Shown: positions 7,057-59,600 of the stretch, one piece after another
Layout: each line of letters begins with the position of its first letter
Position numbering within the stretch: the first letter of the stretch is position 1
NCBI GenBank assembly: GCA_964035545.1
Contig: OZ037773.1
Location: forward strand, 1,579,751 to 1,643,750
DNA from: Bugula neritina
Lineage: Eukaryota; Animalia; Bryozoa
Reading direction: 5' to 3'
DNA: 64,000 nt
Position numbers and translations under genes: made by a program
The notes under the pieces: generated by a model
Seen by the model: only the letters and a program-made list of their open reading frames with translations
The model's database searches: none
What the model was told of the DNA's origin: nothing

Positions 7057-10000
7057 CTAAGATTTGAATATCTGGTTACACTCGTCCTGATCAATATTGT
7101 CGGGACAGGCGCATGTGGAGTCGTAGTTGGAGGTGGGGAGACAAAGGAACTGACAGCCACCATTGTTGTAAGTGCATTCATTCGTACCTGTAATGTGTAA
7201 TATACTTGATAACATAGTAATATAGTATAATACGTAATATATCCAATAACATAGTAATATAATATAATATGTAATATACTTGATAACATAGTAATATAAT
7301 ATAATGCGTAATATACTTGATAACATAGTAATATAGTATAATACGTAATATACCCAATAACATAGTAATATAATATAATATGTAATATACCTGACAACAT
7401 AGCAATATACCTGACAACATAGTAATATAATATAGTATGTAATATATCTGACAACACAGTAATATAGTATAATACGTAATATACCCAATAACATAGTAAT
7501 ATAATATAGTATGTAATATACCTGACAACATAGTAATATACCTGATAATATGTAATATAATATAATATATAATATATCTGACAACATAGTAATATACCTA
7601 ATCATATGTAATGTACCTGATAACATAGTAATATACCTGATAACATAGTAATATACCTGATAATATGTAATACAATATAATTTTATATACTATAGCTAGT
7701 AATATAATAATAATATACCCAGTAATATGTTAATAATATACAATAAATATTGCATCTCGTATGTTAGTTATAGTATATAATATATACTATACTTAGCAAT
7801 ATATTATAATATATACTACACCTAGTAGTATAGTAATAATATATAATATATACTATACCTGGTAATATAGTAATAATATATAATATATACTATACCTAGT
7901 AATATAGTAATAATATATAATATATACTATACCTGGTAATATAGTAATAATATATAATATATACTACACCTAGTAATATAGTAATAATATATAATATATA
8001 CTATACCTGGTAATACAGTAATAATATATAATATATACTATACCTGGTAATATAGTAATAATATATAATATATACTATACCTAGTAATATAGTAATAATA
8101 TATAGTATATACTATACCTGGTAATATAGTAATAATATATAATATATACTACACCTAGTAATATAGTAATAATATATAATATATACTACACCTAGTAATA
8201 TAGTAATAATATATAATATATACTATACCTGGTAAACACTGACTAGCTACAGGCTCGATGCTGTAAGCTTTCCCATTTCCGCCAACAGGAAACAGCATGC
8301 TAGCTCCAAGCACTTCCCCTCCGCGAGGAATTGACTGAATCGCATTTTTGTGCCAGTCCGTCCAGTAGAAGTTGTCCCGGAAGGTGGCAAGTCCAAACGG
8401 GTAGTTGGCGAGGTCGTAGATGATGCTTCTACCGCTGCCATCTGGCCGCACACACTCCAGTTTCTGCGTACCGGCATCAGACCAGCAGACCTGCTGTCGG
8501 TACAGGTCAAAGGTCAAACCATTTGGTAGTCCAAGGCCAGTGTCGACTATCACTTGTCGGTCTGTTCCGTCAGTGTTGGCAGCCTCTATCTTCGGGCCGT
8601 CCCTATTCCAGTCGGTCCAGTAGATTTTACTGGAACAAGACATGATGAAACTCTGACTGGTTAATATATCGGTATAAAATATAGTATATAGTAAAGTATA
8701 GTGTAGTATATAGTATAGTATTTAATGTATCGTATAGCACATAGCATAGTATAGTATATAGTAGCTTAGTATCGTACAGTATATAGTATAGTATAGAATG
8801 TAGTATAGTATATAGTCTAGTATAGTAGAAAGTAACATACTATGGTACAGTATATTGTAGTAATAATAGTAACAGTAAGTATTGTAAGTGAAGAGAACAT
8901 ACTTACCCTTCAATAGGATCCACAGTTATAGCCCTAGGATTGACAAGGTCACTGTCTATCAACACTTTACGGTATTTCCCTTCCAAGTCGGAGACCTCAA
9001 TTCGATCAAGGGCGGAGTCAGTGAAGAAAAGAGTTCTACTTATCCAATCAACTGCCAGGCCTTCGGGAGAGCCGAGATCTGCAATTAGTGAGTGGATAAA
9101 GAAACCCCTCAACATTAGTGAGTGGATACAGAAACCCCTCAACATTAGTGAGTGGATACAGAAACCCCTCAACATTAGTGAGTGGATAGAGACACCCCTC
9201 AACATTAGTAAGTGGATAAAGAAACCCCTCAACATTAGTGAGTGGATAGAGACACCCCTCAACATTAGTGAGTGGATACAGAAACCCCTCAACATTAGTG
9301 AGTGGATACAGAACCCCCCTCAACATTAGTGAGTGGATAGAGAAGTCTCTTTGAGCTAGTAAATAGAGTTCAACTTGTGACGAACTCTGTGACTGAAGAC
9401 TATTAACTATTAGATAGCTACTAGCTACTAGGTAGTCATTTACTATAAATTATTAGATAACGAGTTGCTACTAACTACTAGATAAAAAGTTACTACTAAC
9501 TACTATATAAAGAGTTACTACTAACTACTAGATAAAGACTATTGCATGGATATATAACCTGCTATAATGACGTGACTGTCTGTGCTGTTGTCCAGAGAAG
9601 CCCTGCTAATGGTGCCGGTGCTGATGTCGCTGTAGTAGAATTGTCTGTCCTTGCAATCAGCTGCCAATCCCACAAGTGTCCCGCCTACACAAACAGAAAT
9701 TAAGATTGGGGAAAGTGAGAGTTAGTTGTAGTATAGTGAGAGCTAGTAGTAGTATAGTGAGAGCTAGTAGTAGTATAGTGAGAGCTAGTAGTAGTATAGT
9801 GAGAGCTAGTAGTAGTATAGTGAGAGCTAGTAGTAGTGTAGTGAGAACTAGTAGCAGTATAGTGAGAGCTGGTAGTAGTATAGTGAGAGCTAGTAGTAGT
9901 GTAGTGAGAACTAGTAGCAGTATAGTGAGAGCTAGTAGTAGGGTAGTGAGAACTAGTAGTAGTATAATGAGAGTTAGTAGTAGTATAGTGAGAGCTAGTA

Positions 10001-13000
10001 GTAGTATAGTGAGAGCTGGTAGTAGTATAGTGAGAGCAAGTAGTAGTATAGTGAGAGCAAGTAGTAGTATAGTGAGAGCTAGTAGTAGTATAGTGAGAGC
10101 TAGTAGTAGTATAGTGAGAGCTAGCAGTAGTGTAGTGAGAGCTAGTAGTAGTATAGTGAGAGCTAGTAGTAGTATAGTGAGAGTTAGTAGTAGTATAGTG
10201 AGAGCTAGTAGTAGTATAGTGAGAGCTAGTAGTAGTATAGTGAGAGCTAGTAGTAGTATAGTGAGAGCTAGCAGTAGTGTAGTGAGAGCTAGTAGTAGTA
10301 TAGTGAGAGTTAGTAGTAGTAGTATAGTGAGAGCTAGTAGTAGTATAGTGAGAGCTAGTAGCAGTATAGTGAGAGTTAGTAGTAGTGTAGTGAGAGCTAG
10401 TAGTAGTATAGTGAGAGTTAGTAGTAGTAGTATAGTGAGAGTTAGTAGTAGTAGTATAGTGAGAGCTAGTAGTAGTATAGTGAGAGCTAGTAGCAGTATA
10501 GTGAGAGTTAGTAGTAGTGTAGTGAGAGCTAGTAGTAGTATAGTGAGAGTTAGTAGTAGTAGTATAGTGAGAGCTAGTAGTAGTATAGTGAGAGCTAGTA
10601 GTAGTATAGTGAGAGCTAGTAGTAGTATAGTGAGAGCTAGCAGTAGTGTAGTGAGAGCTAGTAGTAGTATAGTGAGAGTTAGTAGTAGTAGTATAGTGAG
10701 AGCTAGTAGTAGTATAGTGAGAGCTAGTAGCAGTATAGTGAGAGTTAGTAGTAGTGTAGTGAGAGCTAGTAGTAGTATAGTGAGAGTTAGTAGTAGTAGT
10801 ATAGTGAGAGCTAGTAGTAGTATAGTGAGAGCTAGTAGTAGTATAGTGAGAGCTAGTAGTAGTATAGTGAGAGCTAGTAGTAGTATAGTGAGAGTTAGTA
10901 GTAGTATTGTGAGAGTTAGTAGTAGTATAGTGAGAGTTAGTAGTAGTGTAGTGAGAGCTAGTAGTAGTATAGTGAGAGCTAGTAGTAGTATAGTGAGAGC
11001 TAGTAGTAGTATAGTGAGAGCTAGTAGTAGTATAGTGAGAGCTAGTAGTAGTATAGTGAGAGCTAGTAGTAGTATAGTGAGAGCTAGTAGTAGTATAGTG
11101 AGTTAGTAGTAGTATAGTGAGAGTTAGTAGTAGTGTAGTGAGAGCTAGTAGTAGTATAGTGAGAGCTAGTAGTAGTGTAGTGAGATGCATCACCTTACAC
11201 ACAACTTTCATTAAATTCAATTCTTTTGACACATTTTGTGAGAAAAAATAAATGTAGCTGCAGCTGAAAGAAAACATTATGTTAGATCCAATCAAAACTC
11301 AGTTACCTTTTCTAACGATGATACATAGATAAACATAAGTTTCCGCATTAAATGACAAATCCAAGCAACATTAGCAAAAACATATTTTATTACATGAATT
11401 ATATTATATTCTAAGTATAATTTATAGACAACCCCATAACAACCCTATAGGCAATCGCACGGTAACTCACCAGATTTGAAGAGAATTCTCCGCCCTCGAT
11501 CACTGCCAGCCTGGTAGAATGGGACCCTGAAGATGGACATGCCTTGAGAGAAGAGTAGATAGTTGCCCTTCTCGTTCAGTGCTGTAAACAGGGAGCAAAG
11601 TCTAACACTCACTAATTAATGACAAGATATGTTACAAGAATATATAGACTGTCAGCTTAGATTGGTCTTCTTTATCAGTGGAAAGGCACTGCCTTTACTA
11701 ACATATACCAGACTCAATCTAAAGAATACAGACAGAGTTTTAAAGATACCGAATTTGTACAGCTTACAGAAAATTACAAGCCAGGTTTTGAAAGTCGTGT
11801 AAAGATCAAAGCTTTCTTTGTGCATACTGTGGTCGTAGGATTCTTCAAATAGACTTACGAGAGCATGTAGAGCCATCGCCACGGTAACCAGGATTGCAGA
11901 TACAGACAAAGTCACCAGCAGAAGTTCTGGAGCAGACGGCATTCCTGTCACAGAGGGCCGGTCTGGTCAAGCAGTTGTCTGTAAAAATTACACCATGTAA
12001 TGAAACAGCCACACAATACTATCAAAGTGAGGCCAATCACTAGGTTTCCATACTTCACATTATGCGAATGGATTTTTTATTTGCCTAATGGAAATAGTCG
12101 CATCGAAGCAAAACCACAACCATAAGTTAATGCAAACTGCAAGCACAAATTAATGTTACAGGCATCCATTTGCATAATGCGCATGTCATTGAAATACAGT
12201 GAATGTGGAATATTCAGGTCAAGGTTAAATAATCAGCCACCGAATACAGTGCGCCCTCCGTATCTTACTAAGCTGCTGGTCCCGAAACCTCAATTCGTGA
12301 CAAAGTAGAATACTACATTACACTTTAGGACGTGGTTGATTTGGCCATTTGTCCCTAAACATACATACATAAGCCACAAAACAGGGGTCCAAGCCCTTTT
12401 CGTGGATTTATGTGAGAACTGGATCAGGAGATATGGAGGGAGAACTGTAATATCATGTAATATCATAAATTAGTTACGTTTGACAAACAATGACAGAGTG
12501 TATTGTGCCAAAAGAACTTTAACATGTCCTCATCCTTACCCTGTATAGCAGTGCAGGAAACACCATCTCCAATAAAGCCATTTCTACAGACACATTTGGG
12601 TCCCAGTGCAGTGTCGTAGCAATCGGCATCGAGATGGCAGACATTAACTTGATTACACATCGTCACGGCTACAAAACAGGAAATGAACTCTTAGTGTATG
12701 ACATGATACAATGAGCTCTAAAATACAATATTATTATACAATGAGCTTTAGGAATACAACATGATACAATGAGTTCTAGGATTACAATGATCTCTAAAAT
12801 ACAATATGTTACAATGAGCTCTACGAATACATTATGCTACAATGAGCTCTAGGAATACAATATGCTACAATGAGCTCTAGGAATACAATATGCTACAATG
12901 AGCTCTAGAGTGTCTGCTGCAAAGAATGACTTACCTGTAGTGGTGCAGAGTTGTCCATCTCCCTGGTAACCGTCGTCACAGGTACACTGATACTTATTCT

Positions 13001-16000
13001 GTTCCGAGGAGAGCTGACAGTGGGCGTTGGCCCCGCACTCCTGATGACTTTCACAGTCAGCCTCTACACACTCAGATCCAGAGCCTGTCAACACAACAGT
13101 CATTAGTCAATGAAGACTGAATCAACCAATCAGCTGTCGGGTATGATGTATGTATTTATTTACAGCCGGCACAAGTGATGTGAGCATGCTTAAAGACAAA
13201 AGTACTTACGAAGGAATCCGGGGTAACAGAGGCAGCCATAACTCCCGTCTCCTTGAGCTACACAGTAACTGTTGACATTGCACAGAGTGGGCGTGTCCAG
13301 ACAGCTCTTGGGTACCGCCTCTTTCTCTGTATGTGAAACCAACAGTTAGCAAGGGTTACTGTATTATGTAACTATATAGCTTCATACTATTATATTACTA
13401 TAGCGAGATCGTCATATATGCAAATGGTGAGTTCCTTTATGCTACCTGTGGGTGTGGTAGGGGGAGGAACCTACATACCTGTGGGTGTGTTAGTGGGAGG
13501 GACATACATACCTGTGGGTGTGTTAGTGGGAGGGACATACATACCTGTGGGTGTGTTAGTGGGAGGAACATACATACCTGTGGGTGTGTTAGTGGGAGGA
13601 ACATACATACCTGTGGGTGTGTTAGTGGGAGGGACATACATACCTGTGGGTGTGGTAGGGGGAGGAACATACATACCTGTGGGTGTGTTAGTGGGAGGGA
13701 CACACATACCTGTGGGTGTGGTAGTAACCTACATACCTGTGGGTGTGGTAGGGGGAGGAACCTACATACCTGTGGGTGTGGTGGTGGGAGGGACATACAT
13801 ACCTGTGGGTGTAGTGGTGGTGGTGGTAGTGGGAGGAAGTATAGAGGTGGATTCTATAAGCTGACAAGATCTGCCATCGCCAGTGTATCCCGGAAGACAC
13901 GCACAGTAGTAGTAGAGTCTATCTAAATTGTACAGACACTCGGCGTGGAAAGAGCAGTAGGCACAGCTGGCATCTGGAGGACTACTGCATGACTCGCCAT
14001 CTCCAGAGAATCCATCTATACACTGGCACTCGTATTTCCTAGTCTCATCATTGTAGAGGCATTCAGCATTGCTGTCACATATATCTGCCTCATCACATGT
14101 CACCACTACAGTATATACAGTAGCAACTACAGCCTATACAGGGGCAACCACAGTATATACAGCAACAACTACAGTATATACAGTAGCAACTACAGCCTAT
14201 ACAGTGGCAACGACAGTATATACAGCAACAACTACAGTTTATACAGTAGCAACTACAGCCTATACAGTAGCAACTACAGTATATACAGCAACAACTACAG
14301 TATATATAGTAGCAACTACAGTATATACAGTAGCAACTACAGTCTATATTCTATACAGTAGCAACTACAGTCTATACAGTAGCAACTCCAGTCTATACAG
14401 TAGCAACTACAGTATATACAGTAGCAACTGCGGTGTATACAACGTAAACTATAGTATAAAAGATAACAACTGCAATGTAGATTGTATCAACATACAGTAT
14501 ATTCACAAGCACATACCCACAGGGTCACAATAGCTGCCATCTCCTCTATAGCCAGGTTTACAGATACAGGAGACATAATCCCCCTGATACACACACTCGG
14601 CATATTTGTGGCAGCTTAGGTCTCTGCAAGATTTCCTGCCCTCTTCCATCTCTGTGGAACAAATTCAAAGTAGATAGGCAAGTACACAGGCTAAAGATAT
14701 ATCTAAATATACAGCCTACATAGATATCTTGGTACATAGAGTATGTAGAGACCCTGGGTGGTACACAAGCTAGATGTAGATATGGTGGTACACAAGCTAG
14801 ATGTAGATATGGTGGTACACATGCTAGATGTAGATATGGTGGTACACAAGCTAGATGTAGATATGGTGGTACACAAGCTAGATGTAGATATGGTGGTACA
14901 CTGGCTACTTACCGCAGAGATACCCGTCTCCACTGAAGCCCATCTTACAGGTGCATCTATAGCCACCATCTGTGTTGGTGCAAGTGGCATTTTCAGAGCA
15001 AGTATTCAATCCAGTGCTGCATTCGTCCAGATCTACACATCGAGTGTAACAGTTGAGGAAGTGTAGCAGCATTCCTAACTAAGCAAGTTCAAAATATCAT
15101 AAGACTCCATATTTAATCGCAGGACTTACCAATGCAGTTCAAACCACTTCCTTCATAGCCTTGTTTACAGGTACATGTGAACCCATCTCCTTTTGGTATA
15201 CAATCTGCATTGTAGTGACAGTCATGGCTGGCACACACATCCCCTATGGTATAAGCAAGTCACCAACTCATGTACAGTTTTGTGAAGGATATAGAAGGAA
15301 GATGACATTAGATTGCAGCAGAACAAAATATGCTTTTGTGAACTATAATGATTTTTTAGCCAAATAGACTATAAATCATTTGCACAACTTTGTCAATTAT
15401 ATTGAACAAAACTAACAGTATATTAAGATTTAAGCTACAAGTCAACAGACTAATATTGTAATTACTGATTATATTATAGGTAGTGTAATAATGATGGAGC
15501 AAAGTCAGATGTTGATATTATGCTAAAGATAATTTATTGCTTTTTTTGTTAGAAAGTTACAAATATTAAATATATATAAATATCATTGTAATTATATTCA
15601 AAATATTAACATTATATACAGATATATAGTAATTTTTCAATTTTCTTATCTTTCATCAATTGTTAATTTATAGAGCTTAAAAACAGTTCTAAGTCTGATG
15701 TCTTTTTGTTTGATTTATTTTTAAGTTGAGATTTGAACATGTTGCCAACTTTATCTTGCTGAAATTTCTTCAGAATAGCTTTGCTCTTGGTACTAGCTAC
15801 TCTGGGCTGGACAATTCTCTTTACACTTTTATTAGAGAGCTCACTGTTAGCCTTAAATGCTTGCATGGGAGAATCATTATTAATTATAAATGAAGATGAT
15901 GTAGGCTTGTCAACAAATGCGTGATGGTTTTTCTCTCTGCTGACTGAGCGAGATTCATTTTTCATATCTGATTGTTTGTGAAGCAATTTCCGTCGCTTAG

Positions 16001-19000: not shown

Positions 19001-22000
19001 AGTGTTCAAACATTTCCTCAGCTGACACCAAAACACTGACAATCATCTTCTATGTTAACCAAGTGTAACCTTCAAACCCGTAGTTATTTTATTCACAAAA
19101 ATCAGATTGCTTTCATTAATCACTCATTCCTATGTGGTTTTAAAACTTAATTTGGCTTCTCATTCAGTTTTTGGCTGAAATACCAACTTTTCGACTAACA
19201 TTTATTCTATCCTGTTGCATTCTACAAGTTAATATGTAGGGTGCCTTTAGTAATATACACTACATATTATTATATTATGATATAACATATATAATACTTT
19301 GAATACATATATGATATATAATCTATTATATATCATATACTATGGGATATGATAATATACGATCTATATAACATGGATATCAGATACATTACATTATTAA
19401 ACTCGTTGCTGTTTTATGTGTGGATGATGATTTATCGAATGTCACCCAACATATCTATAAATAGCTACAGCAGAAATGAAGGCTGCAGGAAGTGTGTTTA
19501 TTTACTAACTCTACTTTTAGTTATCTAGGTAGGTGCAGTAATAGAGAAATTGAGAAAAGCCTGTGCTCTAGATTAAAAATGTAGCAAACGAAGTTATGTT
19601 ATGGCAAAAAGTTCAACCCGCATCACAAACCAAAATTTAATAATAAAATTAAAGAACTTAAGCTATCTCAATTTATCCACCACTGCACTTAAATGGAGTT
19701 ATCATAAGAGGAAGGAACCAGACCTGTGATGGAGAATCCGTTTTCACTGGTTCCGGTTGAGGCTGTAGCAAACAGCCACCCCATAAGTTCTCCAAGAATG
19801 ACGAGGATCTGCAGGGGGTAGCCGGTGAGAGGAGGCAACTTGCTAATCGCTGTGTACGTTCTTGCCTCGTCGACAGCAACATAGACGTACATCCCAGCAT
19901 TACTAATGTCCTCTTCATTCACTGTTCCATATACCTTACCATTGACCCAAAGGGCATCATCTACAGTAGAATACAGCCATTAGGTGTTAACAGAATCCAG
20001 TTAACAGTTTCAACAGTGACATACAGTCAGTAGATATTAATAGCAAAATACAGTCATTGTAGTTAGCCAGTGGTAATTACAAACAATATCTACAGGACGT
20101 ATATAACTGGGACATAGTTCAAGAGAATTTCACCTCCCAAGCATGAGATTCCATTTCCATAGTAACCAAGCTTACAGACACAACATCCCTCTATGCAAAC
20201 TGCATTGGCACTGCACCCCTGAGGGCACTCGTTAGTATCCGGTCCAGGTAGAGCTGTAAGTAGAATAATAGCCGTAGAACTATCAGCTACAACAGGTTGT
20301 AGCTTAAAAACTGTCAGCTAAATGGGCTGAAACATAAATTGCCGAATTGTTTGGTGTTAACTGCTACACTTTTTAGTGAAGTGACGTAGTAGTTAAGGTT
20401 TATGTAGGACTGTTTTGTGAAATATAAGTGAAAAATAACAAGAATAATTCAGTTTGACTATTTCTCAGTCTGATTAACTGAGACTGCAATTGTTATTAGT
20501 GACACATTAAGAGGAGGTATTGGCCCACCTGGACTTGGAGTGGTGGTCATCATGTTAATTTCAGGCTGTTCTATGACCGTCAAGTATCCTATCTTATACA
20601 TCCATACTCCAGGTATGCCAGTGTTGCTCTCTCTACAGTGACAGAGAGCTACTTGAGTATTATTTGAGTATATGTAGCAGAGTGCTACTTGAGCATTACT
20701 TAAGTATACATGTACATGTTACAACACCACTTGATTACAAGTAACAAGCGCTGTTAGAGTATTACTGAAGAATACATAACAGAATGCTACTTGAGCACAA
20801 GTTACAGAGTGCAGTTGAAGAATTACTTAAGTGATACAACATGACTAGAGCACAGGTAAGTACATTAGAGTATTACTTGAGCCTTACTTGAGCAGATGTT
20901 ACATAATGTTACTAAATAATTGCTTGAGTGTTATTCATATACATATAGATATCTTAGAACTAAGGAGACCTGTAGTATTAACACTCTATTACCCATTTGC
21001 CAAACTAAATACATCTATTACTCAAACCATACATGCAGCTATAAAAACAAATAGAAGAGTGTAGTTTGGCTAATACACACTTATCCCAGTTAAAAGCTTC
21101 TTCGAATCCACTTCCAGGCACAACAATAGGGCCGTATTGCTGCGCCCCGCTATCAAAGCCAGCTTGCGCTGAAACCTCTGCTATTTCTGGCTTCAGGTCT
21201 GCCTGTATCCAGTTGATGCTGTTATCCATGTAGATGAAGAAAGCATAACTCCTAAATGCATCTGTGGCAATCACCAACTGGAAGGTGTTGAGCTGTAACA
21301 CAGTTATATATAGTCTTATATTATCTAGTTATATACTATAGAGTTTATATATAATTATATACTATGATATATAAGGTGACTATAAGCTTTATAAAAAAGA
21401 AGTTTGTATAGTCAGTGATATCTAATCTAATTAGTGTTCAGCTTGATTTTTTCATAAAAATCTTAAGCACTTTTTACTTGCCAGTTTTTCACAGCTCCAA
21501 GTGAACGGTTACAGGATATACTCACCTTAGTAAACCGTTGGTAGAACGCACCTACGTTCACCCAGGTAACAGTGAACAGATAAACTTACCTTAGTAAACC
21601 GTTGGTAGAACGCACCTACGTTCACCCAGGTAACAGTGAACAGATAAACTTACCTTAGTAAACCGTTGGTAGAACGCACCTACGTTCACCCAGGTAACAA
21701 TAAGCAGGTAAACTCACCTTAGTAAACCGTTGGTAGAACGCACCTACGTTCACCCAGGTAACAATGAGAAGAGATGCCGGCTGAAAAGCCTCATCAGGTC
21801 TGAACACTTTGCTGATATCAGAGGCAGCTTGGTTGAGTTCAGCCTCCTCTTTGGTTTCTCTGGAAGTATATTTGTGACATTCTGGAATATTCTAAGAAAC
21901 ATATTGGAATATTCTAGCAAACATATTGCAGTTGTCATGAATCAACCAGAAGTTATAGAACTGAAGCTATGACCATCAAATGATATTATTTGGTTTTAAG

Positions 22001-30776: not shown

Positions 30777-30810
<34 letters not shown>

Positions 30811-30845
30811 CACTACTACTACTACTACTACTACTAGTACTACTG

Positions 30846-30910
<65 letters not shown>

Positions 30911-33900
30911 GCTACTACTATTACTACTACTACTACTACTACTACTACTGCTGCTACTGCTACCACTACTACTACTAATAGTAATGCTACTACTGCTACT
31001 GGCTATTTATTTAGGAGTACGCTAAAGTTCTAAGAAAAAGGGAGGAAGAGAGGCTGGCCAAGAAGCACCAGGACCTGCAGGATTTGCAGAACTCCGTCCC
31101 CTCTCAGCCAGCCGTCAGCAAAGTTGACATGAAGAAGCTGACGGAGAAAGCGGTGAAGGCAGCTGCTACTTACAATGCTTTTCTGATGAAGGAGAAGAGG
31201 GAGGAGAGAAGACATTACTTTGATATACAGACAGGGGTAGGTGTGTCATATGTGGGTGTGTTTCATATATATGGGTGTGTCTTGTGTATGTGGGTGTGTC
31301 TCATATATATATGGGTGTTTCTCAAATATGTGGGTGTGTACAAGAGGTATTAAGCACGCCCTGTGATGCCTGGTTTGCCTAAAAGAGACGTATTTACTGA
31401 CCAATTTGCTTAACATTGATGAAAATATTACAGATAATTCAGTCTCCTAAGTCAGTGTCGGGCGTTCTCCCTCCAGAACTCACCCGTCCCTCACCCTACC
31501 CTGTAGCTGTATTGAGGGGACAGTTTGCTCAATACTACAAAAGGTATGAGTTGCTGCACTGTTACTCAAGTTGATTTTATTGGTGTGTCCTAAACATCTC
31601 TTTCATTATAGATCTCTTTCATTGCCTCCCTCCGTGTATAGGTACACTCCTGATGAGCTGAACTATCTACCTGTGAAGACAGTGCTGTATGACCCTCCAA
31701 TCAGAATACACAACCTTTACATGCCCCTCCCACCAGAGGAAGAGGCCACGCCCACTCCACTGCCTCAGGTATTTACATAGCTTATAGTTGTTGGACCCCT
31801 TCCCTCTGTAGACTTCCTGTGGGGGTAGCTTACACACCTCCACCCAATCATGGCCCTAGTTCCCAGTCCGAGTCACATATACAGAGCTGTGCTCAAAACT
31901 GTGACCTTCCTTTTTACTTACCAGCCTTTTTCTGATCATAAAATTTTCCAATCTGAAAATGACTCGCTATATTCTAGCTCAAGGGTGGGCAACTTCTTTT
32001 GCATGAAGGCCAAGTTCAGAAGTCGGCCAAGACGAAGCGTCATATGATTGAACACATAAAAAACTTTATCATAACAAAGTAGTTTGTCACCAAACCTATG
32101 CTGTGCTAATCAGGGTGCATATAACAATTTTTTACTTATTTTAAGCATTAAAAGGGTCACTAAAAAATGGGCAAAGGGTCACAGGTGGCCCTGGGGCTCC
32201 CACTTACATACCCCTATTCTAGCTGGTCTGTATTCAGCAATAGGTTTTTGGAATTAATGAATAATGCTTTACCCACACAACTTTCCTGTCTATCATTACA
32301 ATATTAAACTTCTATTAGGTGGACAACTCCCTGCTGCCGACCACTGTTGAGCTCCTGACAGCTGACCCTCTGCCACCAAAGAAACACATGACAAGATTAG
32401 TCGACGCCATTTGCATTCTGTGTGGGCGGGAAGAGAACAGATCGGGTGCTGCTGAGAAATGTATCAAATGTAACCAGTGTCGGCGTGAAAGTACGTTACT
32501 CTATTAGTCTGTAATACTTACTCTATACCTCTGTAATACTTACTCTATACCTCTGTAATACTCACTCTATACCTCTGTAATACTCACTCTATACCTCTGT
32601 AATACTCACTCTATACCTCTGTAATACTTACTCTATTCCTCTGTAATACTCACTCTATACCCTGTAATACTCACTCTATACCTCTGTAATACTTACTCTA
32701 TTCCTCTGTAATACTTACTCTATTCCTCTGTAATACTCACTCTATACCCTGTAATACTCACTCTATACCCTGTAATACTTACTCTATACCTCTGTAATAC
32801 TCACTCTATACCTCTGTAATACTTACTCTATACCTCTGTAATACTTACTCTATACCTCTGTAATACTCACTCTATACCTCTGTAATACTTACTCTATACC
32901 TCTCTAATACTCACTCTATACCCTGTAATACTCACTCTATACCCTGTAATACTCACTCTATACCTCTGTAATACTTACTCTATACCTCTCTAATACTCAC
33001 TCTATACCCTGTAATACTCACTCTATACCCTGTAATACTTACTCTATACCTCTGTAATACTTACTCTATACCCTGTAATACTTACTCTATACCTCTGTAA
33101 TACTCACTCTATACCTCTGTAATACTCACTCTATACCTCTGTAATACTCACTCTATACCTCTGTAATACTCACTCTATACCTCTGTAATACTCACTCTAT
33201 ACCCTGTAATACTCACTCTATACCTCTGTAATACTCACTCTATACCTCTGTAATACTCACTCTATACCTCTGTAATACTTACTCTATTACCCTGTAATAC
33301 TTACTCTATACCCTGTAATACTTACTCTATTACTCTGTAATACTTACTCTATACCTCTGTAATACTCACTCTATACCTCTGTAATACTTACTCTATAAGT
33401 GAAAGTATTTTACCTTCTACTCTTTATCTCTTAACTTGCGTTGAAGAAATAAATTCAAGATCTACAAAAAGTTATTTCTCTTTTACTAAACTAGACTGTA
33501 TTCTAGTTGTACTCTATAGTATTCTTATTGTGTGATGTAGCCCACCCAAGGTGTATTATATACTCTATAATATTCTTATTGTATGATGTAGCCCACCCAA
33601 GTTGTATTATATACTCTATAACATTCTTATTGTATGATGTAGCTCACCCAAGGTGTATTATATACTCTATAATATTCTTATTGTATGATGTAGCCCACCC
33701 AAGGTGTATTATATACTCTATAGTATTCTTATTGTATGATGTAGCCCACCCAAGGTGTATCATATACTCTATAAGTCTATAATATTCTTATTGTATGATG
33801 TAGCTCACCCAAGTTGTATTATATACTCTATAACATTCTTATTGTATGATGTAGCTCACCCAAGGTGTATTATATACTCTATAATATTCATATTGTATGA

Positions 33901-34722
33901 TGTAGCCCACCCAAGGTGTATCATATACTCTATAAGTCTATAATATTCTTATTGTATGATGTAGCTCACCCAAGTTGTATTATATACTCTATAATATTCA
34001 TATTGTATGATGTAGCCCACCCAAGGTGTATTATATACTCTATAATATACTTATTGTATGATGTAGCTCACCCAAGGTGTATTATATACTCTATAATATT
34101 CTTATTGGATGATGTAGCTCACCCAAGTTGTATTATATACTCTATAATATTCATATTGTATGATGTAGCTCACCCAAGTTGTATTATATACTCTATAATA
34201 TATTTATTGTATGATGTAGCCCACCCAAGGTGTATTATATACTCTATAATATACATATTGTATGATGTAGCCCACCCAAGTTGCTCAGAGTTGACTCCTG
34301 AGATGCTGACTAGAGTTGTCACCTACAGCTGGACATGCATGGAGTGTAAGGTGTGTGTCAGGTGCTCTGATCCTGGCAATGAGGTATGTACTGATACTAT
34401 ATACACTACTATTATGTATACTATTACAGTGTATACTAATACCATGCATAGTGTATACTAATACAGTGTATACTGATACTGTATATACTAATACAGTGTA
34501 TACTGATACTGTATGTACTGATACTATGTATACTAATATAGTGTATACTGATACTGTTTATACTACAGTTGGTATATTTACTGTGGTAACACATGTATTT
34601 TGCAGGACAAGATGATAGTATGCGATAAATGTGACAGAGGTTACCACACTTTCTGTGTTGGCCTCAAAGCTATCCCAGAGGAGAGCATTTGGGCTTGTCC
34701 AGAGTGTGCTGGGTCCAGCTAA
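28568..34722 (+). CDS. PHF10: PHD finger protein 10 (BAF45A/SAYP, PBAF subunit), ~573 aa
   Basis: Exons 28568-28619, 28962-29618, 30263-30346, 30618-30685, 31015-31236, 31434-31543, 31642-31768, 32319-32490, 34271-34383, 34606-34722. SAY-domain motifs: EYRWP, LQEQVSTFLNVKSFRRKHPDLERR, LGLTALRS, RYTPDELNYLP. C-terminal double PHD (CILC..CNQC..HPSC..WTCMECKVC..CDKCDRGYHTFC). The first coding exon is less certain. Confidence 0.93.
28651..28868. mobile_element. Palindromic MITE family B copy
   Basis: GGTAAAAATGG/GGCACAGGTAATAATGGCA repeats on the left are mirrored by TGTGCCATT..TACC on the right. A reverse copy lies at 49510-49690. Confidence 0.7.
29660..30225. repeat. 20-bp minisatellite, ~28 copies, PHF10 intron
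   Basis: Unit CTCACTAACTCAGTTATACT. Confidence 0.95.
30695..31000. repeat. (ACT)n microsatellite filling a PHF10 intron
   Basis: About 100 ACT-type triplets. It accounts for the poly-Thr and poly-Val ORFs. Confidence 0.95.
31980..32216. mobile_element. Decayed hAT-type MITE, 237 bp
   Basis: Starts CAAGGGTGGGCAAC and ends with the degenerate CTTACATACCCCTA. Perfect 8-bp TSD TTCTAGCT (31972-31979, 32217-32224). Confidence 0.75.
32495..33397. repeat. 21-22-bp minisatellite, ~40 copies, starting at the PHF10 exon-8 donor
   Basis: Unit CTCTGTAATACT(C/T)ACTCTATAC. Confidence 0.95.
33505..34284. repeat. 51-bp (twice 59-bp) tandem repeat x15 spanning the PHF10 exon-9 acceptor
   Basis: GATGTAG|C(C/T)CACCCAAG with the AG ending at 33540, 33591, 33642, 33693, 33744, 33803, 33854, 33905, 33964, 34015, 34066, 34117, 34168, 34219 and 34270. 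Confidence 0.95.
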
Positions 34723-36403
34723 CTCACTCCAGAGTGTGCTGGGTCAAATTAACTCTCACTTCAGAGTGTGCTGGGTCAGGCTAACTCTCACTCCAGAGTG
34801 CGCTGTACAATGTACATTTAGACCATTATCATGTCTTTCTGTAATTGAAATCAAATTCTGACTGTCTATAAATAGCGGTGTTGTGTAGGTGTAGTTTGTA
34901 CTTACTCTACAGTGACATACACTCGGTTTCTCAGTCCAGGGTTGTATATATAAATCAACTTATATGTAAATATTTTGTACATATTGAATAAAGCATGTTT
35001 CTCATTTTATAATATTAATGTTATGTCATCAAGTCGTTCTACAATAAAACAGATTTTAACGGTCAACGGAGTTGTATTCTCTTTATGTTGTGTCTCGCAT
35101 CTGCTTTCTTAGATACCTTTTTTGGATATTGGTTTTATAAGCATGCTGATTTAAGACTTCTCTATGTTATCATGAGATTGGAGTGCTGTATATGTATAGA
35201 TTTGAATAGTACAGTCTGATATTGAATAATACTGTTCCATGTTTCAGAATTACAGAACTCCCTTTTTACATGGCACTAGCTCACTGCTGGTATATTCATG
35301 CCTTTTTACCAGAGAGCATGTGTCTACATTAGCCAATGGGGCTGGAGTATGCAATATGCAGTACATAAGCAATCAACCAATGCAGTATAACAAACATAAT
35401 TACATAACATTCATAATTGATCTTGCTGTGAAGATAATTTTTATTACATGTCTGTCCACAGCTGTACCTACTGCTTATGGAAGATGAATGTATCTTATGC
35501 TTTGAAGCACATTGCCTTTCCTACCTGTCTAGTTTGTTTTCACCTGACGATGCTCTAATTCTAGATACAGGTTTTAATTAACAAAAAGTTGTACAAGTTC
35601 AACAAGTTTAAATATCACGTCTAAAAGCAGCATCAAGTTGAGGGAGACTGAGTACAGTATTTCTGTATACATCTTTATGTCTGAACTCCAAACTTGAGAT
35701 CTCTCCAGGAACCGCTGCACTTAGTGACCACCATTTTGGCGCTGCTTCAAGCATTTTCAACGATTTTGCACTTGCACCTTAAACTTTGGATGAGCTGACA
35801 ACTTCAGTGTATTATAGTAAACTTATTGTATGGTTCTAAGCTACAGCTATATCCAGTCAAAACTGTCAATAAATTGCTATTATTAACTGTTACATGTGCA
35901 AATGGTAAAGTAACAGTGTAATGCACAGCTGACATATAACTGAAATCCATCAATAGCTTTCAATTCCTGAAACTAGTTGCACTGAATATGTGTTATCAAT
36001 TTAAATTGTTGCAGTTCTCAGTGTCTGAAGAATAAACTTGCATCTTAGTTTTACATAATATTGTTGCAGATTTTCTTAAGATATGTAAAACCTAACATAT
36101 ATATTTGACGGTATAACTCAGTTTTGGTCAGATTGTTTGTAAGTGCTCTAAGTTTCGTGGCATTACGTATCTCGATCTCTAAACATTGCAGAAATGGAGA
36201 TTTTGAAGAAAAAATTTTCCCTAAATATTATTTTGTTGAAAGCTCTTAGCTAGATGAGCTGTCTAACACTTTCAACAAACTTCCAAGTGTTGATATATAA
36301 AATAATGTGGAGAAATCGAAAATTTTGTTTAGTAAATCCTATAAATATGTGGCTTCCAATATCTCCATTACTGCACCTACCTCACCTCTAAACACCATTT
36401 TTG

Positions 36404-40809: not shown

Positions 40810-45888
<5,079 letters not shown>

Positions 45889-47186: not shown

Positions 47187-47361
47187 GAGAGTTCAAAATA
47201 ATGAACAAAAATGCATGTACGGTGCCCTATAACGAACAGGCTGAGTGGTTGCCTGGGCTACAGACTAATTCGTAATACTGGAAGCTGCACACTGACTACA
47301 ATTTCAATTCGCTCCCAACTTGCATTTTCTCTAAAAGAAAACATTGATACTTTTTGCTATT

Positions 47362-49690: not shown

Positions 49691-50893
49691 AAAATTATCT
49701 AGCTTTAGTTCTGCTGCTATAGATGCAATTCTCCAGAAATATTCATAATTCATATATCACAGAAACATAGAAGCTACATTGACTAAAACACTCCATATTT
49801 CTAAGTTACGAATTCTGTATGCTAAATATATTCGAGAAAGTGCAAGAAATGATTGTAGCTTCAACTTTTTTCCCTGGTGTGCAGACTTAGCACCCATCAT
49901 TTATGTCTAAACTGACTTTTTCCAGAAAATAAAGATCCAAGTTTAGTGAGATGGTGTGCACCAGCACGTGCAACTTGGTGCACCTGCTGTGAAGTGTCTA
50001 GCAGCTGCCATGTGTTTAGTTACTGGCGTTGCTACATTTCTTGATGTATAGATACTACAGAACAGCACATTCTCACAGACAACTAAAGTTTGCATTATAA
50101 TAGAGGTGATGCTGAACATAATTCATCCAAGGGGCATGTGTTTTATGTCTCAATAACTTGACACTATCTCACTCATGCTTAACATGGTAATATACCAAAT
50201 ATAATTCCCACATAAGTTGTCATTAGGGAAAATATCTAGTTATACTGCACAATACACTTGCTTGTTATGGCATCTTGTGTATAAACAAACATGAGTCAGA
50301 TGGACAGAAATAGCAAATTAATAAATTGTTCGGCATTGAATAAAGTAGGACAGATTAGATTTGCATGAATTCCAGCTACTCAACAGGAGATAGGTGATAA
50401 TAGAATTAGATTTGCATGAACTAAGTATGTCACGTGATTTTTATTGTGTACCATATGGTTTATAATGTATTGGAATTCGCCACTATAGTTGCACTATTTC
50501 CAATAAAATAGTTGACAATTCATGAAATGATAATCAGAAGTGAACCATTGTAGTGAGAATTGGTAATTGTCTTCTCTAAACAGGCTTTGCTCCATAGTCT
50601 ATTATAGGAATATTTCTGTTACTAAGGAGTTATACAAACAGAAGACAATTTTATATATATGCAGTATGTTATCCAGTTTTATATATTGTATAGTTTATTA
50701 TGGCAGATTATATCTACAAATTAATAAATAAAATGCATAGAAAATATTTCTAGAGTTTAAAAACTTTGCACAGATCTTGAATTACTGTAACAAGTAACTA
50801 GTGTATGTTGTGACAATTTGGATAGTACTTGGCCCTTTGAATAAAAAGTAGAAAAATAGATAAGCACACGTTAAGATGAGTTGAGCCATTGAG

Positions 50894-51239
50894 TTAAAGA
50901 GTGAATAACTCTTCTTCCTGTCTCTGCTCATGACTCATCAGCTTCTTCTTTATCTTTGACCTTACCACAGGTTGCGGGGTCACAGTGAGGTCATCGAGAG
51001 ACACCGGAGACAGTTTGGGGTGACTATCCACAGCGTAATTCCCGCAGCCGTTCTCCAGAGAATTAGGTTGGTGAATAAAACGATCAAACAGAAGACCATC
51101 TGAGTCACCATTTGTTAGCAGCCTGCAATATATATATATAGTAAAACTATAAGTTTTACTATTGCGAAGGTGTGGGCCATGGTACTCTGTTCTGTGCTGA
51201 TGAGGGGACAAATCCCGAAACAGCTGCTGTCCACAGATT

Positions 51240-51316
<77 letters not shown>

Positions 51317-53740: not shown

Positions 53741-56616
53741 ATGTGTAGCTAAATAAACAAGAATAACATACAAGAATAGATATATTATATATCAGCATGC
53801 ATAAGTCTCTAGTATATAATAGTCCATAAAACTAGTTAGCTACAGTTGAAAAAAAAACCAATATTTCATGCTTTCATCAGTAATGACTTTTCTCCAGAAA
53901 GAATAAAATATTGAACTCAATATCTTAATTTAATGAAATGAAGTTTTAAATCTAATCTATAATTGTGTCTTCTATTGAACATTTTCAACCACTAACACCA
54001 TTTGTTATATCACGTAGACCTTCCATTCAGTATACTACTAGCATGGCTAATTGCACTAGAAGTACTGCTACCAGCATAAATTACTATGAAATAGAAAAAC
54101 CACAATAATGTACCATATAGCTATACCTACAAAACAAAAGGAAAGTGTGATAATATCACTAAGTATCCAGCTTCTTTAATTTACTTCACCATGTCTGGCA
54201 GACTTGTAATCACTCATTCTCACCTGCCATTACTGTCAGTGTCACAAGTCACTACTGTCTGTCACATGTCAAAACTATCCACATGTTGCTACTGTCAATG
54301 TCAAATACTACTGTGGGGTCAGTCAGAGTGAGAATATTCAGTGTGAAGTAAGTGATAGGTCCAGATTAAAGTCAACATTTTAAAAATACCATATAACTAA
54401 TATATTTTAGATCAGTAATTAAACACAGGCTTTTACTTGATGCAGTGATATATTAAATATTTATATTGGCATCCAAGCTTGAAATTTTCATCTTAGTTTC
54501 ACTATTCATTTTGATATTCCTTTTTACATAGATAGCAAATATTTTACTCTAATGCAAAATGAAACAGTTGGATAGTTATAAATGATGAATGTACTACAGA
54601 GTAGGATATAACATACAGCTATAATGTCAGTTAATGGGTCACTCTAACCTTAGCCTTAGAAGGAATCTTGAAATAAAATATTTAGAATATACAACACAGT
54701 ACAGCCAGTGCATATTGTGGACTATGCTCACTGTTACTTCAGACACACATTAAATGATTAGTAATTCACAGATATCCAACCATATCAAATATAGAAGAGC
54801 ATGGGGCAGAAATAGCTTCTTGTGAAATCTTGTAAATACATTAAATGAGCTTCTATCTTAAATAATCCAACAGAATTTTGACTTTTGACTTTTTTCTTCT
54901 TCCATTTTTGTTCATGCCTACTTATATTATAATCAGTATTTACACTGAATTTAGCAATGTGTTGTCATGTTTGTGATATGCAATCAATCAATCAATCAGT
55001 CAATTAATCAATGAGTATGACTTATTTTAACAGTAACAGTAACTGTAGATGTGAGAGTTAGCTTGAGTAGGCTTTATTCATCACAATTCATCCCATAGAA
55101 AATTGACGATTGGATTTTAAAATTGTTATCACCATAGTAGCACTAAGGAATGACAAGTTGAATGCAAACATTTATGCCTGAAAATAAGGCACTACATTAG
55201 AAATAGAAGAAATAAAAACATACTCATAAAACTAGTTGAGACTTATGAATAAAAAGGTAAGCAGAGAGCCTGTTGTTAGCAGATCGGAACCTGGAACTTT
55301 TCAATCGAAATTACAAGGTGGCCATAATGAAAGAAAAAGCAGAGGAAAGTGATGGATGTGTAATGCAAGAGATGTAACTGTAATGCAGATACTCAGCAAA
55401 TGTGAAAATTTAACACAAGGAGAATATACAAAGAGATATGATCCTATAGTTGGTCTACATGGTCTACATACAAAACTGTAGATTAGATGGCATCACTTGA
55501 AGTACATTAGAAAAATACTCATTGACTAAACAGACAGCTCAACTAGCATCAAATCAAACCTTCATCTTGATCTTCAAAAAATCCTATAATCACATTTACT
55601 ATTAGTATTGCATTTTGATTTACAATAAGTATAGTAATAATTAATGGTGTATCATAATTATTATTGAATTATTATTTAAGATATAATATAGTTATACTTA
55701 TACTATAAGTTATAGTATAAGATTAAGTATATTCATAATTAATTAATTTAATTCAATTGGTAAACTAAAAGTGAAACTGTTATTAGTAATACTAATACTA
55801 TTAGTAATACTATTAGTATTACATTTACTCTAGACATAGTATAAATATAATAGAATAATTATTACTCAGAATCTATATTGGACAGCTACCCATTTACTGT
55901 TGAACTTGATAAAACTAAAATTAAATGCTATTAGTATTTCTATGCCGGTTATTGTTACACTTAGTCTTACTGTCACTGGTTAAGCTAACACTTTCACTTT
56001 GGGTTTGACTCCCAGTGACACTTACAGTTGTGAGTTACTGTTAGTGTTACCCATGGCCATACTTATACTCATAGTGAGTATCATACTCATAGTGATAGTC
56101 AATAGTCATACTGATGCCGATGGTGCTTACAGTTACTGACTTAGACTTACAGTTACGAATACTTACTCATTGATCAGAAATCATGCGCATGAACCAACTT
56201 TTTCGATGTCTCAAATGCTTTCTTTCACACATTGACATAACAAATGCGAGGTTATTAAAACAAGTAGCGTGTGAAATTAACTTGAACGACTTTTGGTTTT
56301 CATGTTGATGTTACTCGTTAGCTCAAATTGAAATTAATCTGCTAGACAAAGTACGATAATAGTTGACTCGCTAGCGAAACGAAACCACGCCGGAAATATC
56401 ACTTGCAAAAGGAAACCCATATCACAATTACGTCTACAACGTCTACAACGTCTGCAAAGCGAGATCCTTTGGCTTTTGGCTTTGCACTTTGCAGTTGCAC
56501 TTTGTCTGCAAATTACAAAACTTTAAAGAATCAGCAGTCCGACGTTGATTACTTTCAGTTTTTATTCCTCAAATTTTTAAAATTATTAATGTATGTTAAT
56601 AAACAATAACATTAAT

Positions 56617-59600
56617 ATGAGACTGAGTTTGATTACTAAACTAAAACTACGAAACCCAAATCTATCTTCGCAAAATCCTAGATTAAGATTTAGCACAAAG
56701 TCAAACGGCTCTTACAGTAGCACAACTACTACACCTAAGTCATTACTTGATTTTGCACGATTAAAACCCAGTCGACGTAATAAATTCTTACCCTTCTCTG
56801 TCCAATTAAGTAGTTATTCCTCATCACCTTGGCCTGAATTTAGCCAGTATGAAACTCATGCTGAATTGTATCAGTTTAGTTTAGATAATCCAGAAAGTTT
56901 TTGGGGAACATTGGCTAAGAGTAAGTTAAGATGGCAGCAATTATTCGATAAAGTGCATCAATGCGATATGGAGAAAGGGCAGTTTTCCTGGTTCTTAAAT
57001 GGAAGTCTTAACATTTCCGGTAAGTACAAACATACCTACTGCATGAATTTAAAAAATCATTTTTTAATTTCTTTATATTTTTTCAACACTAAGTATGATG
57101 TGCCTAATTAAGGTAGACTTCAAAGTGATCTTATTAAACATTAATTGAATTCCGATTGTTAAACATCAATGTTTTCGACATTTCATAACTATACTTTCAG
57201 ATAACTGCATAGACAGACATGTGGAGTCAAATCCTAATCAAACTGCTCTTATCTGGGAAAAAGATGAGCCTGGAACTGAGGAGAGAGTAAGCTACAAGTG
57301 AGTAAAACTGGAGCTGGTAAAAGTGTAAGTGAGAGTGTAGTTTAAAGGATAAAGGTGTGAAGTAGAAAGAACTTAGAGTCTTAGACTGTAACAGGGCATG
57401 CAATTGGCATACTGGAACTCAATATTTTAGTTTTTCCAGTTGTTTTTGTAGTCACGTCACTTTTTAATTTAACTTTGTACATGCAAAATGTCCTACTCTT
57501 TGTCTGATAGACCTTCTCTTTGTTTGTTAGAGAGCTCTTGGATATGACATGCAGAGTAGCCAATGTTCTGAAAGGTCATGGCATTAGTAAAGGAGATCGG
57601 GTGGCTATCTATATGCCCAACTCACCACTAGCTGTAGCCTCTATGTTGGCGTGTATGAGAATAGGGGCTGTACACAGCGTTGTGTTTGCTGGATTCAGTG
57701 CAGAGGCTTTAGCTACTCGGATACAAGATGGTAGGTTATTGTCATAGAGTTACCTCTCCCCTAGGATACAAGATGGTAGGTTATTGTCATAGAGTTACCT
57801 CTCCCCTAGGATACAAGATGGTAGGTTATTGTCATAGAGTTACCTCTCCCTTAGGATACAAGATGGTAGGTTATTGTCATAAAGTTACCTCTCCCCTAGG
57901 ATACAAGATGGTAGGTTATTGTCATAGAGTTACCTCCACCCTAGGATACAAGGTGGTAGGTTATTGTCATAGAGTTACCTCTCCCCTAGGATACAAGGTG
58001 GTAGGTTATTGTCATAGAGTTACCTCCACCCTAGGATACAAGGTGGTAGGTTATTGTCATAGAGTTACCTCTCCCCTAGGATACAAGATGGTAGGTTATT
58101 GTTATAAAGTTAAAAGCTACTTGCAGTTATGCAACTGCTTTTTACTTACTGTTGAAAACTGGCAGCTAGCTCTGTTTTGGTATCTCGTCATGAAATATAC
58201 TGAGAAATATTAACGCTGCTAATGATCATCAGCTGCTGTTGTAGATCAAAAGTGAAAACTCTCACCAAGGTAAGCTAGATGCTAGAATGATTGTAATTTT
58301 TTTAGTTCCAATTTTGTATTTTTAAAAAAATGGTATTCGGTATTGTTTGCTCTTGAAAGGTTTGACAAATGTAGTATGTCGGGGCTAGTTTCTTCTCAAT
58401 CGCTTACTGTAATGTTTTAGCAGTTAAGTGAAAGTAAGTTATTCCTGTTTGATGAACTCTTGTTGTAAGAGTCATATAAGCACCAGGATATCTGACTAGC
58501 CATCTTTTGTGTATAAAGTTTATAAAATAAAGTCAGTATAGGTTGGTGTCCAGCTACAAAAACACTTCTTCTGTAGTATAATTTAGTGCCAGAAAGATAA
58601 TATTTTTTATGTCAGTAACTTCTTTTTTTTCTATTACAAATTTACCTACTTCTAAAAATATACTATGACATTGTATGTGCTCAATATTGTCGCTTTTTTA
58701 ATATTTTTTTTGTAATATTTTGGAGATTTTTAAGATGAAAATATCTGGTAGCCTAAGATGAATTTGTCTTATCAGAGAATTGCATTAGGATGATTCTACT
58801 AATATATTCTTTTTGTGACTGGACATTTCTCTCTCTCTCTCTCTATCTTTCTCTATCTCTCTCTGGTTTATGTGTAGCTTCTTGCGTGGCTGTTACCACA
58901 ACAGCTATCTTTCTCTATCTCTCTCTGGTCTGTGTGTAGCTTCTTACGTGGCTGTTACCACAACAGCTATCTTTCTCTATCTCTCTCTGGTCTGTGTGTG
59001 GCTTCTTGTGTGACTGTGATCACAACAGCTATCTTTCTCTATCTCTCTCTGGTCTGTGTGTGGCTTCTTGTGTGACTGTGATCACAACAGCTATCTTTCT
59101 CTATCTCTCTCTGGTCTATGTGTAGCTTCTTGCGTGACTGTGATCACAACAGCTATCTTTCTCTATCTCTCTCTGGTCTGTGTGTAGCTTCTTGTGTGAC
59201 TGTGATCACAACAGCTATCTTTCTCTATCTCTCTCTGGTCTATGTGTAGCTTCTTGCGTGGCTGTGATCACAACAGACCAGGCTGTCAGAGGTGGGAAAA
59301 CCATTGAGCTGAAGAAAACAGTTGACTCAGCTGTAGAACAATGTCCTTCTGTCAGGAATGTGTTTGTCGCCAGGAGAACAGGTGCAGATGTGCCCTATCA
59401 GAGCAAAGATGTTTCTCTTGATAAGGTAATGTATACATTGTATTTGAACTGGCTATTGTATACAATAACCATTTTATTATCCATAAAGTTGAAAGGTTAA
59501 CAGCTCTAAACAGAATAATGGCAGCCAGCGCAACAAGTAATTGAAGAGGTATATATCACAGCTGCTGCTTCAGCATAGCTCAATAACCAAAACCACAAAA

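Follow-up and report, generated by a model that had tools for sequence, protein, structure and literature searches.

Tandem arrays across splice junctions in Bugula neritina: frequent local duplication within short introns as the probable explanation

This work examines tandem arrays that overlap splice junctions in a 64,000-nt window of the genome of the bryozoan Bugula neritina (GenBank assembly GCA_964035545.1, contig OZ037773.1, positions 1,579,751 to 1,643,750 of the forward strand; all coordinates below count from the first base of this window). In three genes of the window, a nidogen-like gene, a PHF10-like gene, and an acetyl-CoA synthetase (ACSS) gene, seven junctions are themselves taken up into the repeat. 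A high rate of local tandem duplication, together with the geometry of such events in short introns, probably explains these arrays; we assign this explanation a probability of roughly 70%. The repeat units are private to their loci, and the arrays persist in a second lineage with changed copy numbers. Overlap with junctions lies at the geometric expectation, and the ACSS transcripts use the exon-proximal site copies. We judge the mechanism to be ordinary and the genome to be unusual.

Arrays were detected with Tandem Repeats Finder (TRF), which gave ∼40 to 60 distinct arrays in the window. Every one of the seven junction-spanning arrays that the initial annotation had read from the bare sequence was recovered, and our gene models place the junctions where that annotation had put them. 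By both TRF and the gene models, the arrays are real and in register with the following junctions:

57719..58112, plus strand: ACSS donor array, 45 bp x 8.8 (TRF and RNA). Each unit joins the final 12 nt of exon 3 to 33 nt of intron; of nine copies of RTG|GTAGGT, the first is the true donor (intron start 57731).
58843..59276, plus strand: ACSS acceptor array, 62 bp x 7 (TRF and RNA). The unit is 35 nt of the intron 3' end plus the initial 27 nt of exon 4; five copies are intact and two have AG changed to GG, and the last copy is the true acceptor (intron end 59249).
21515..21767, minus strand: nidogen array at the donor of the NIDO exon, 64 bp x 4, true donor 21717. Each unit joins 48 nt of exon to 16 nt of intron.
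13443..13812, minus strand: nidogen donor array, 33 bp x 11.4, true donor 13802. Units read GTATGT...CAG, GT first and AG last, with 11 copies of CACAG|GTATGT.
14105..14502, minus strand: nidogen acceptor array, 21 bp (TRF, 14105-14441, x 15.7), true acceptor 14106. The unit ends in CTGTAG (12 occurrences, the final AG at 14106), and the array occupies all but 14 nt of the intron (14106-14516).
7197..8235, minus strand: nidogen donor array of 37-bp GT...AG units (TRF, 7200-8235), true donor 8228. The last intron (7188-8228) consists almost entirely of these units, with 19 donor-like YAG|GTRTA sites, 6 of the 19 being exact 10-mers.
33510..34280, plus strand: PHF10-like acceptor array, 51 bp x 14.8, true acceptor 34270. 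In each unit, 41 nt of intron precede the initial 10 nt of the PHD exon, and GATGTAG|CYCACCCAAG occurs in 15 copies.

Each of the seven arrays takes in some exon sequence or stops precisely at the junction, and each contains between 4 and 19 copies of its splice-site motif. Only the 37- and 33-bp nidogen arrays set a 3' and a 5' splice site side by side, as AG|GT, at every unit border. The exon share of the unit is about 7/37, about 22/33, 12/45, and 48/64 in the donor arrays and 0-1/21, 10/51, and 27/62 in the acceptor arrays, that is, from almost none to three quarters, as expected of random endpoints. It had been remarked that the spanning arrays extend only into the intron; they do, but this is a geometric necessity for any tandem duplication that straddles a junction. 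The units were also said to be mutually unrelated, and only 4 of 465 unit pairs proved related (two within one intron and two AT-rich and of low complexity). No unit had a real match in 195 kb of other sequence from the same assembly.

Overlap with junctions was evaluated on a set of 47 GT-AG introns from four genes (nidogen, PHF10, B56, and ACSS). Gene models were built from homologues combined with GT-AG and reading-frame logic, while seven ACSS introns were taken directly from RNA contigs. The genes of the window are as follows:

∼7060-25618, minus strand: nidogen-like gene, 22 exons, from homologue alignments.
28.9-34.7 kb, plus strand: PHF10-like gene, PHD finger confirmed.
40.8-46 kb, plus strand: PP2A B56 gene.
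∼52-53.8 kb, minus strand: LysM gene, excluded from the intron set.
From 56.5 kb, plus strand: ACSS gene, with TIGR02188 and AMP-binding matches.

The orthologous nidogen locus gives NIDO, G2F, EGF, and LDL-receptor class B matches, and a spliced B. neritina protein (KAF6039099.1) equals the C-terminal nidogen exons of the window except for a few residues. Sequencing runs that contain the window carry one organism label and a 2016 "symbiont metagenome" label, in keeping with the B. neritina metagenome study (PMC5041132), so the DNA of the window is taken to be bryozoan. The second gene we take to be PHF10 from our own reading of conserved N-terminal motifs.

Under a naive null, in which arrays are placed uniformly inside present-day introns, the arrays lie too near the junctions (Kolmogorov-Smirnov [KS] test, 2.5e-5; Fisher test, 1e-7). 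This null is wrong, since it forbids straddling and treats as available target whatever later growth of the array, other arrays, or insertions have contributed. We therefore adopted a null in which straddling is permitted, with L-1 straddling starts per junction for a duplication of length L and with events internal to an exon presumed lost. With arrays of TRF score ≥100, 7 spanning arrays were observed against 5.1 expected (P 0.22), and at a score of ≥50, 9 were observed against 6.1 (P 0.13). When positions are expressed in unique-sequence coordinates, the comparison becomes 7 against 7.4 (P 0.66), and array positions fit uniform placement (KS 0.48); at the lower score cutoff it is 9 against 8.5 (P 0.49; KS 0.32). 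The unique remainders of array-bearing introns measure 9 to 2007 nt (many 60 to 130 nt, median near 120 nt), similar in length to array-free introns (76 to 2581 nt, the shorter ones 76 to 135 nt). Roughly one array in four straddles a splice junction, the proportion predicted for random local duplication in short introns. We conclude that no junction-targeted process is needed. The initial annotation had proposed a duplication process focused on exon-intron boundaries, and had named overlap no greater than expected as the result that would contradict it; that is the result obtained, with the spanning count at the straddle-allowed expectation (7 against 5.1 to 7.4; P 0.22 to 0.66). The enrichment over shuffled positions that it had suggested looking for does appear against the intron-interior null and disappears once straddling is allowed. 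Its alternative wording, a selective filter, holds in the plain sense that exon-internal copies would be lost and intron-side copies would be harmless. More generally, tests of junction overlap need a null in which duplications may straddle and in which growth of arrays after their origin is not counted; a naive intron shuffle returns false enrichment.

Other arrays lie close to a junction without taking it up, and one straddles a stop codon instead. For the five near-junction arrays singled out at the outset (9084, 9714, 14901, 32495, and 61278), the proximity was borne out, at distances of 5, 29, 11, 17, and ∼20 nt. The array at 14901 is the one 11 nt from the donor, and in the array at 61.3 kb the first recognisable copy begins ∼20 nt past the donor. 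The remaining near-junction arrays, and others of this kind, are as follows:

9084..9344, minus strand: nidogen 30-bp x 8.7 array, ending 5 nt before acceptor 9079.
9714..11185, minus strand: nidogen 21-bp x 69 array, the largest of the window, ending 29 nt upstream of acceptor 9685.
32491..33397, plus strand: PHF10-like 22-bp x 41 array, at the donor end of the intron that bears the 51-bp acceptor array; a degenerate first copy begins at the donor GT (32491), and the array (32508) is 17 nt from the donor.
60764..60864, plus strand: ACSS 18-bp x 5.8 array, beginning at base +1 of intron 4, with a GTRTA start in 4 of 6 units.
45468..45556, plus strand: B56 27-bp x 3.1 array, beginning 5 nt into intron 8 (donor 45463), with units that start in donor-like fashion (GTGMAGTAAC).
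34698..34805, plus strand: PHF10-like 32-bp x 3.4 array, straddling the stop codon (34720-34722); the last 8 codons and the stop lie in the first copy and further copies in the 3' untranslated region.
41282-41452 and 42304-42511, plus strand: two 16-bp arrays of B56 intron 1 (41270-42578), with one shared unit.

Because the stop-codon array has the same geometry as the junction-spanning ones, splicing is not needed to produce that geometry. The two B56 arrays flank ∼850 nt of unique sequence and look like two parts of a single array into which that sequence was inserted afterwards.

The favoured explanation can be put as a sequence of steps. Local tandem duplication of units of ∼13 to 64 bp would be very frequent in B. 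neritina, and the resulting arrays would then expand and contract by slippage or unequal exchange at the DNA level. Within genes only non-coding copies would survive, as exon-internal events would be purged. Given short introns, a duplicated segment would amount to a sizeable fraction of the intron, and about a quarter of the surviving duplications would be expected to straddle a border between coding and non-coding sequence. A straddling duplication would keep one intact exon, while the extra site copies would land on the intron side and be removed whenever splicing takes the exon-proximal site. Use of a decoy would mostly yield transcripts with a frameshift or an in-frame stop, and these would presumably be cleared by nonsense-mediated decay (NMD). 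For acceptors, where splicing picks the last copy to be transcribed, we propose either exon definition or the clearance of wrong products.

Turnover of the arrays was followed in a second lineage, represented by a 2020 draft assembled from PacBio reads with Canu (GCA_010799875.2; here L005; PMC7576161) and by metagenome contigs from JGI and Logan (L006 to L008). Divergence from the window at the nidogen locus is 10 to 13% for the PacBio draft. The same nidogen arrays occupy the same sites in both the draft and the metagenome contigs, with different copy numbers:

64-bp nidogen array: 4 copies in the window, 2.8 in L005.
33-bp nidogen array: 11.4 copies in the window, 5.6 in L005.
21-bp nidogen acceptor array: 15.7 copies in the window, 8.8 in L005.
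Large 21-bp nidogen array: 69 copies in the window, 31 in L005, 20 in L006, at least 18 in L007.
37-bp nidogen array: 27 copies in the window, about 4.6 in L005.
30-bp nidogen array: 8.7 copies in the window, 2.7 in L005.
25-bp nidogen array: 4.8 copies in the window, 8.8 in L005.

Copy numbers thus differ 2- to 6-fold between two lineages 10 to 13% apart, though short-read contigs may collapse arrays. Unit variants also depend on the lineage: the ACTAAC form of the 33-bp unit predominates in the window alone. At the acceptor of nidogen intron 6, L005 carries an abutting 27-bp x 17 array (2736-3194) where the window has a single copy (19961-20060), which we read as a lineage-specific birth or loss. 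Presence in both lineages with differing copy numbers indicates that the arrays predate the lineage split, turn over fast, and are still being born or lost. That the arrays arose in situ, as first proposed, is supported by both the private units and the orthologous arrays at the same sites. Of the comparison of copy number that had been suggested among individuals and related species, these two lineages supply the part covered here, with differences of 2- to 6-fold.

Splice-site use was read from Logan contigs of three RNA runs (X9, X10, and X14) belonging to three studies. In contigs of all three, 57730 is followed directly by 59250, which means that the first donor copy has been spliced to the last acceptor copy. 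ACSS intron 2 (57731-59249) therefore uses the exon-proximal one of nine donor copies and the exon-proximal one of seven acceptor copies. This agrees with the initial expectation that the spliceosome must choose the exon-proximal site among the decoys, as does the nidogen splice at 8228 (QCLPG|TNEC), which matches a B. neritina protein predicted by AUGUSTUS from the other assembly (P0011). At the other five junctions, exon-proximal use rests on homology or on an AUGUSTUS model. Reading through from an exon into an array runs into stop codons, and for the 45-, 62-, and 64-bp units the majority of decoys would lead to a frameshift or a stop. In the nidogen 33-bp array, use of the second donor (13769) would extend the product by 11 in-frame residues with no stop. 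A protein database search with PHF10 exon A returned only an open reading frame (ORF) from unspliced DNA and no spliced product, and one with the nidogen exon 13804-14103 found no match.

Several points weigh against the explanation by frequent duplication and geometry. The sample comprises 28 to 40 arrays from four genes with 47 introns, too few to exclude a junction bias of less than about 2-fold. Two introns are nearly all array (unique remainders of 9 and 14 nt), so that the ancestral introns would have been shorter than any array-free one. The null is strained for these two, and capping ancestral introns at 76 nt lowers the expectation only to ∼6.8 by our estimate. RNA support is confined to ACSS junctions, the other models being based on homology and splice logic, and the RNA contigs show the dominant isoform, so that low-level decoy use falls below their reach. 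Finally, the favoured explanation does not account for how unevenly the arrays are distributed. Arrays make up 36.5 to 39.6% of the 27.8 kb of intron sequence in the window and are present in 24 to 30 of the 47 introns. They make up 1.5 to 4.2% of all non-intron sequence of the window and 0 to 5% of five intergenic segments, relative to which the density in introns is 10 to 25 times higher.

This excess is taken up by a bolder proposal, which we consider tentative and doubtful. Bryozoan introns may be the substrate of a minisatellite process coupled to transcription or splicing, with the 10- to 25-fold density holding genome-wide, arrays being born and lost within ∼10% divergence, and the spliceosome and NMD coping as a matter of routine with dozens of perfect decoy donors and acceptors. 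If true, B. neritina would be a natural genome-wide experiment in splice-site choice. The apparent restriction of arrays to introns is known from one window. The assembly comprises 216 Mb in nine chromosome-sized contigs, the window being on C9, and in a random 180 kb drawn from the other eight chromosomes and from a remote part of C9, tandem repeats of period ≥7 account for 16.8% of the sequence, or 11.9% when one stretch of pure satellite is left aside; repeat richness is thus genome-wide. One stretch, C3:500001-510000, is an AT-rich satellite (20% GC) with 5- and 26-bp periods over its entire 10 kb. An ACSS paralogue (C1:8208205-8213084) has no tandem array in its five introns of ∼170 to 670 nt, and array load therefore differs strongly among genes. 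Intronic minisatellites are not mentioned in the B. neritina draft-genome paper (PMC7576161) or in the later Flustra foliacea genome paper.

Less likely again is a mutational process aimed at the junctions themselves, through AG|GT microhomology or through breaks or R-loops formed during co-transcriptional splicing. Such a process would fit the closeness of arrays to junctions under the intron-interior null, the near confinement of arrays to transcribed introns, and the CAG|GTA motif that bounds the 37- and 33-bp units on both sides. It would also fit the number of arrays no more than 30 unique nt from a junction, 20 of 28 where 15.6 are expected. However, the excess is gone once straddling and unique-sequence distances are used, and the widely varying exon share implies that unit endpoints are not pinned to AG|GT. 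In addition, many arrays lie at least 40 to 80 nt from either junction, and the array across the PHF10 stop codon has the identical geometry.

We think it improbable, to a somewhat greater degree, that the decoys are functional, selected either as tunable alternative sites or as points of recursive splicing, whose ratchet points are AG|GT. The 33-bp unit, a multiple of 3 with an in-frame second donor, would suit such a role, as would the GT...AG form of the 37- and 33-bp units, each border of which recreates AG|GT; in these two arrays, stepwise AG|GT removal could conceivably yield the same mRNA. The junction-spanning arrays are also kept in two lineages. Yet the exon-proximal ACSS isoform is the only one in three RNA assemblies, and the assembled RNA contigs, which show the dominant isoform, give no evidence of recursive intermediates. 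Most decoys of the 45-, 62-, and 64-bp units disrupt the product, and the 2- to 6-fold drift in copy number, with the AG lost from 2 of 7 ACSS acceptor copies, looks neutral.

That the assembler made the arrays or their copy numbers can be set aside: the large 21-bp array does have 20 and at least 18 copies in short-read metagenome contigs, fewer than the 31 and 69 of the long-read assemblies, but the same arrays stand at the same sites in the independent PacBio/Canu assembly and in the JGI and Logan contigs and are therefore not artefacts, and run X1 contains 91% of the sampled words from a 6-kb ACSS stretch that includes arrays.

Four other ideas about the units were considered, and three of them rejected. 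Transposon-derived introns (introners or miniature inverted-repeat transposable elements [MITEs]) are rejected, as the units are private and no real matches to them occur in the 195 kb of other sequence. An origin of the units by rolling-circle reverse transcription of lariats is rejected because several of them contain exon sequence (12, 27, and 48 nt). Organisation on a yeast-like branch point is rejected as well, with CTAAY near the 3' end in only 8 of 47 introns. That sense-strand arrays are G-poor to avoid GT and AG is true by bases, but by count it applies to only 19 of 40 arrays. By bases, the sense strand of the arrays is 11.7% G and 22% C, with 3.9 against 6.1 AG per 100 nt, and the longest arrays drive these values.

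Other features of the window and its source data were recorded alongside the arrays. Mobile-element remnants lie between genes and arrays lie in introns; one such remnant is an RVT_1 fragment of a non-long-terminal-repeat retrotransposon in intergenic DNA (1403-3091, minus strand). A (CTA)x99 microsatellite (30705-31000) takes up nearly the whole of a PHF10 intron of 329 nt, with 19 and 14 nt on either side of it. Nidogen intron 9 contains a 297-amino-acid, Lys/Ser-rich ORF (15663-16556, minus strand) without a Pfam match, which could represent a nested gene or the remains of a mobile element. A candidate counterpart is a 292-amino-acid gene call in L006 (3524-4402), between the G2F and EGF calls. 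In metagenome run X3, the summed contig depth over the stretch 59470-59790 of ACSS intron 3 is ∼800x, with numerous contig ends; the stretch is a dispersed repeat, possibly a MITE or a short interspersed nuclear element. This repeat is all that run X3 covers, and the arrays are uncovered in it. Exons of the window (56500-62120) differ by ∼3 to 6% from the RNA contigs of the three studies; together with the nidogen-locus divergence, this points to public data labelled B. neritina representing divergent lineages of a highly heterozygous species or a species complex. Eight small contigs of the assembly (C80, C101, C126, C127, C154, C204, C213, and C231), in which CCT and myosin matches cross many TAA and TAG codons, look like a ciliate contaminant or epibiont.

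Several known systems resemble parts of what is described here. Tandem duplication across AGGT is the basis of the Rogers model of intron gain (Hellsten et al. 2011, PMC3265369; potato RdRp, PMC4974935), and the initial annotation had invoked it. The likeness is that a duplicated splice-site motif yields extra usable GT and AG sites. However, in the Rogers cases an exonic duplication makes a new intron, whereas in B. neritina existing junctions are straddled and decoys added. An intron that is an AG|GT-bounded duplicate of its flanking exon was not found: intron sequence makes up most of each unit, the 64-bp one excepted, and most introns keep a unique remainder of 116 to 730 nt beyond their arrays. 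The relevance of Rogers-type gain is not supported. In the polyubiquitin gene UBC, dual-specific AGGT sites mark off coding repeats, and the choice among these sites is stochastic (Duan et al. 2024, PMC10809524). The AG|GT unit borders of the 37- and 33-bp nidogen arrays are similar, and in-phase site pairs could give the same mRNA, but the UBC repeats are coding and their sites used, while the nidogen units are intronic. In Daphnia pulex, tandem-repeat density is highest in introns, a pattern called rare in animals, and some motifs are strand-biased (PMC3152781). The B. neritina window shares the intron enrichment. The Daphnia excess concerns units of 1 to 8 bp, with those >8 bp depleted, whereas the units here are 13 to 64 bp and constitute 36 to 40% of intron bases.

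The nearest parallel is the 37-bp variable-number tandem repeat (VNTR) in intron 7 of human F7, in which the first unit spans the exon-intron boundary and identical pseudo-donors follow the authentic donor; only the most upstream, exon-proximal donor is used (Borensztajn et al. 2006, PMC1557585). The boundary-spanning first unit, the near-identical site copies, and the exon-proximal use (from RNA for ACSS) are common to both. F7 is one locus in a mammal and involves donors only, whereas B. neritina has several such junctions per gene, acceptors among them, with up to 15 to 19 copies, and its arrays sit where more than one third of the examined intron DNA is private minisatellite. Single junction-spanning VNTRs such as that of F7 serve as models of choice among identical sites; B. 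neritina seems to offer many at once, covering donors and acceptors with natural variation in copy number. At its acceptor arrays the site used is the last transcribed, which the 5'-to-3' scanning invoked for donors in the F7 model does not explain. Relative to F7 and Daphnia, three features look new in this one window: the scale, the inclusion of acceptors alongside donors, and an apparent confinement of the arrays to introns.

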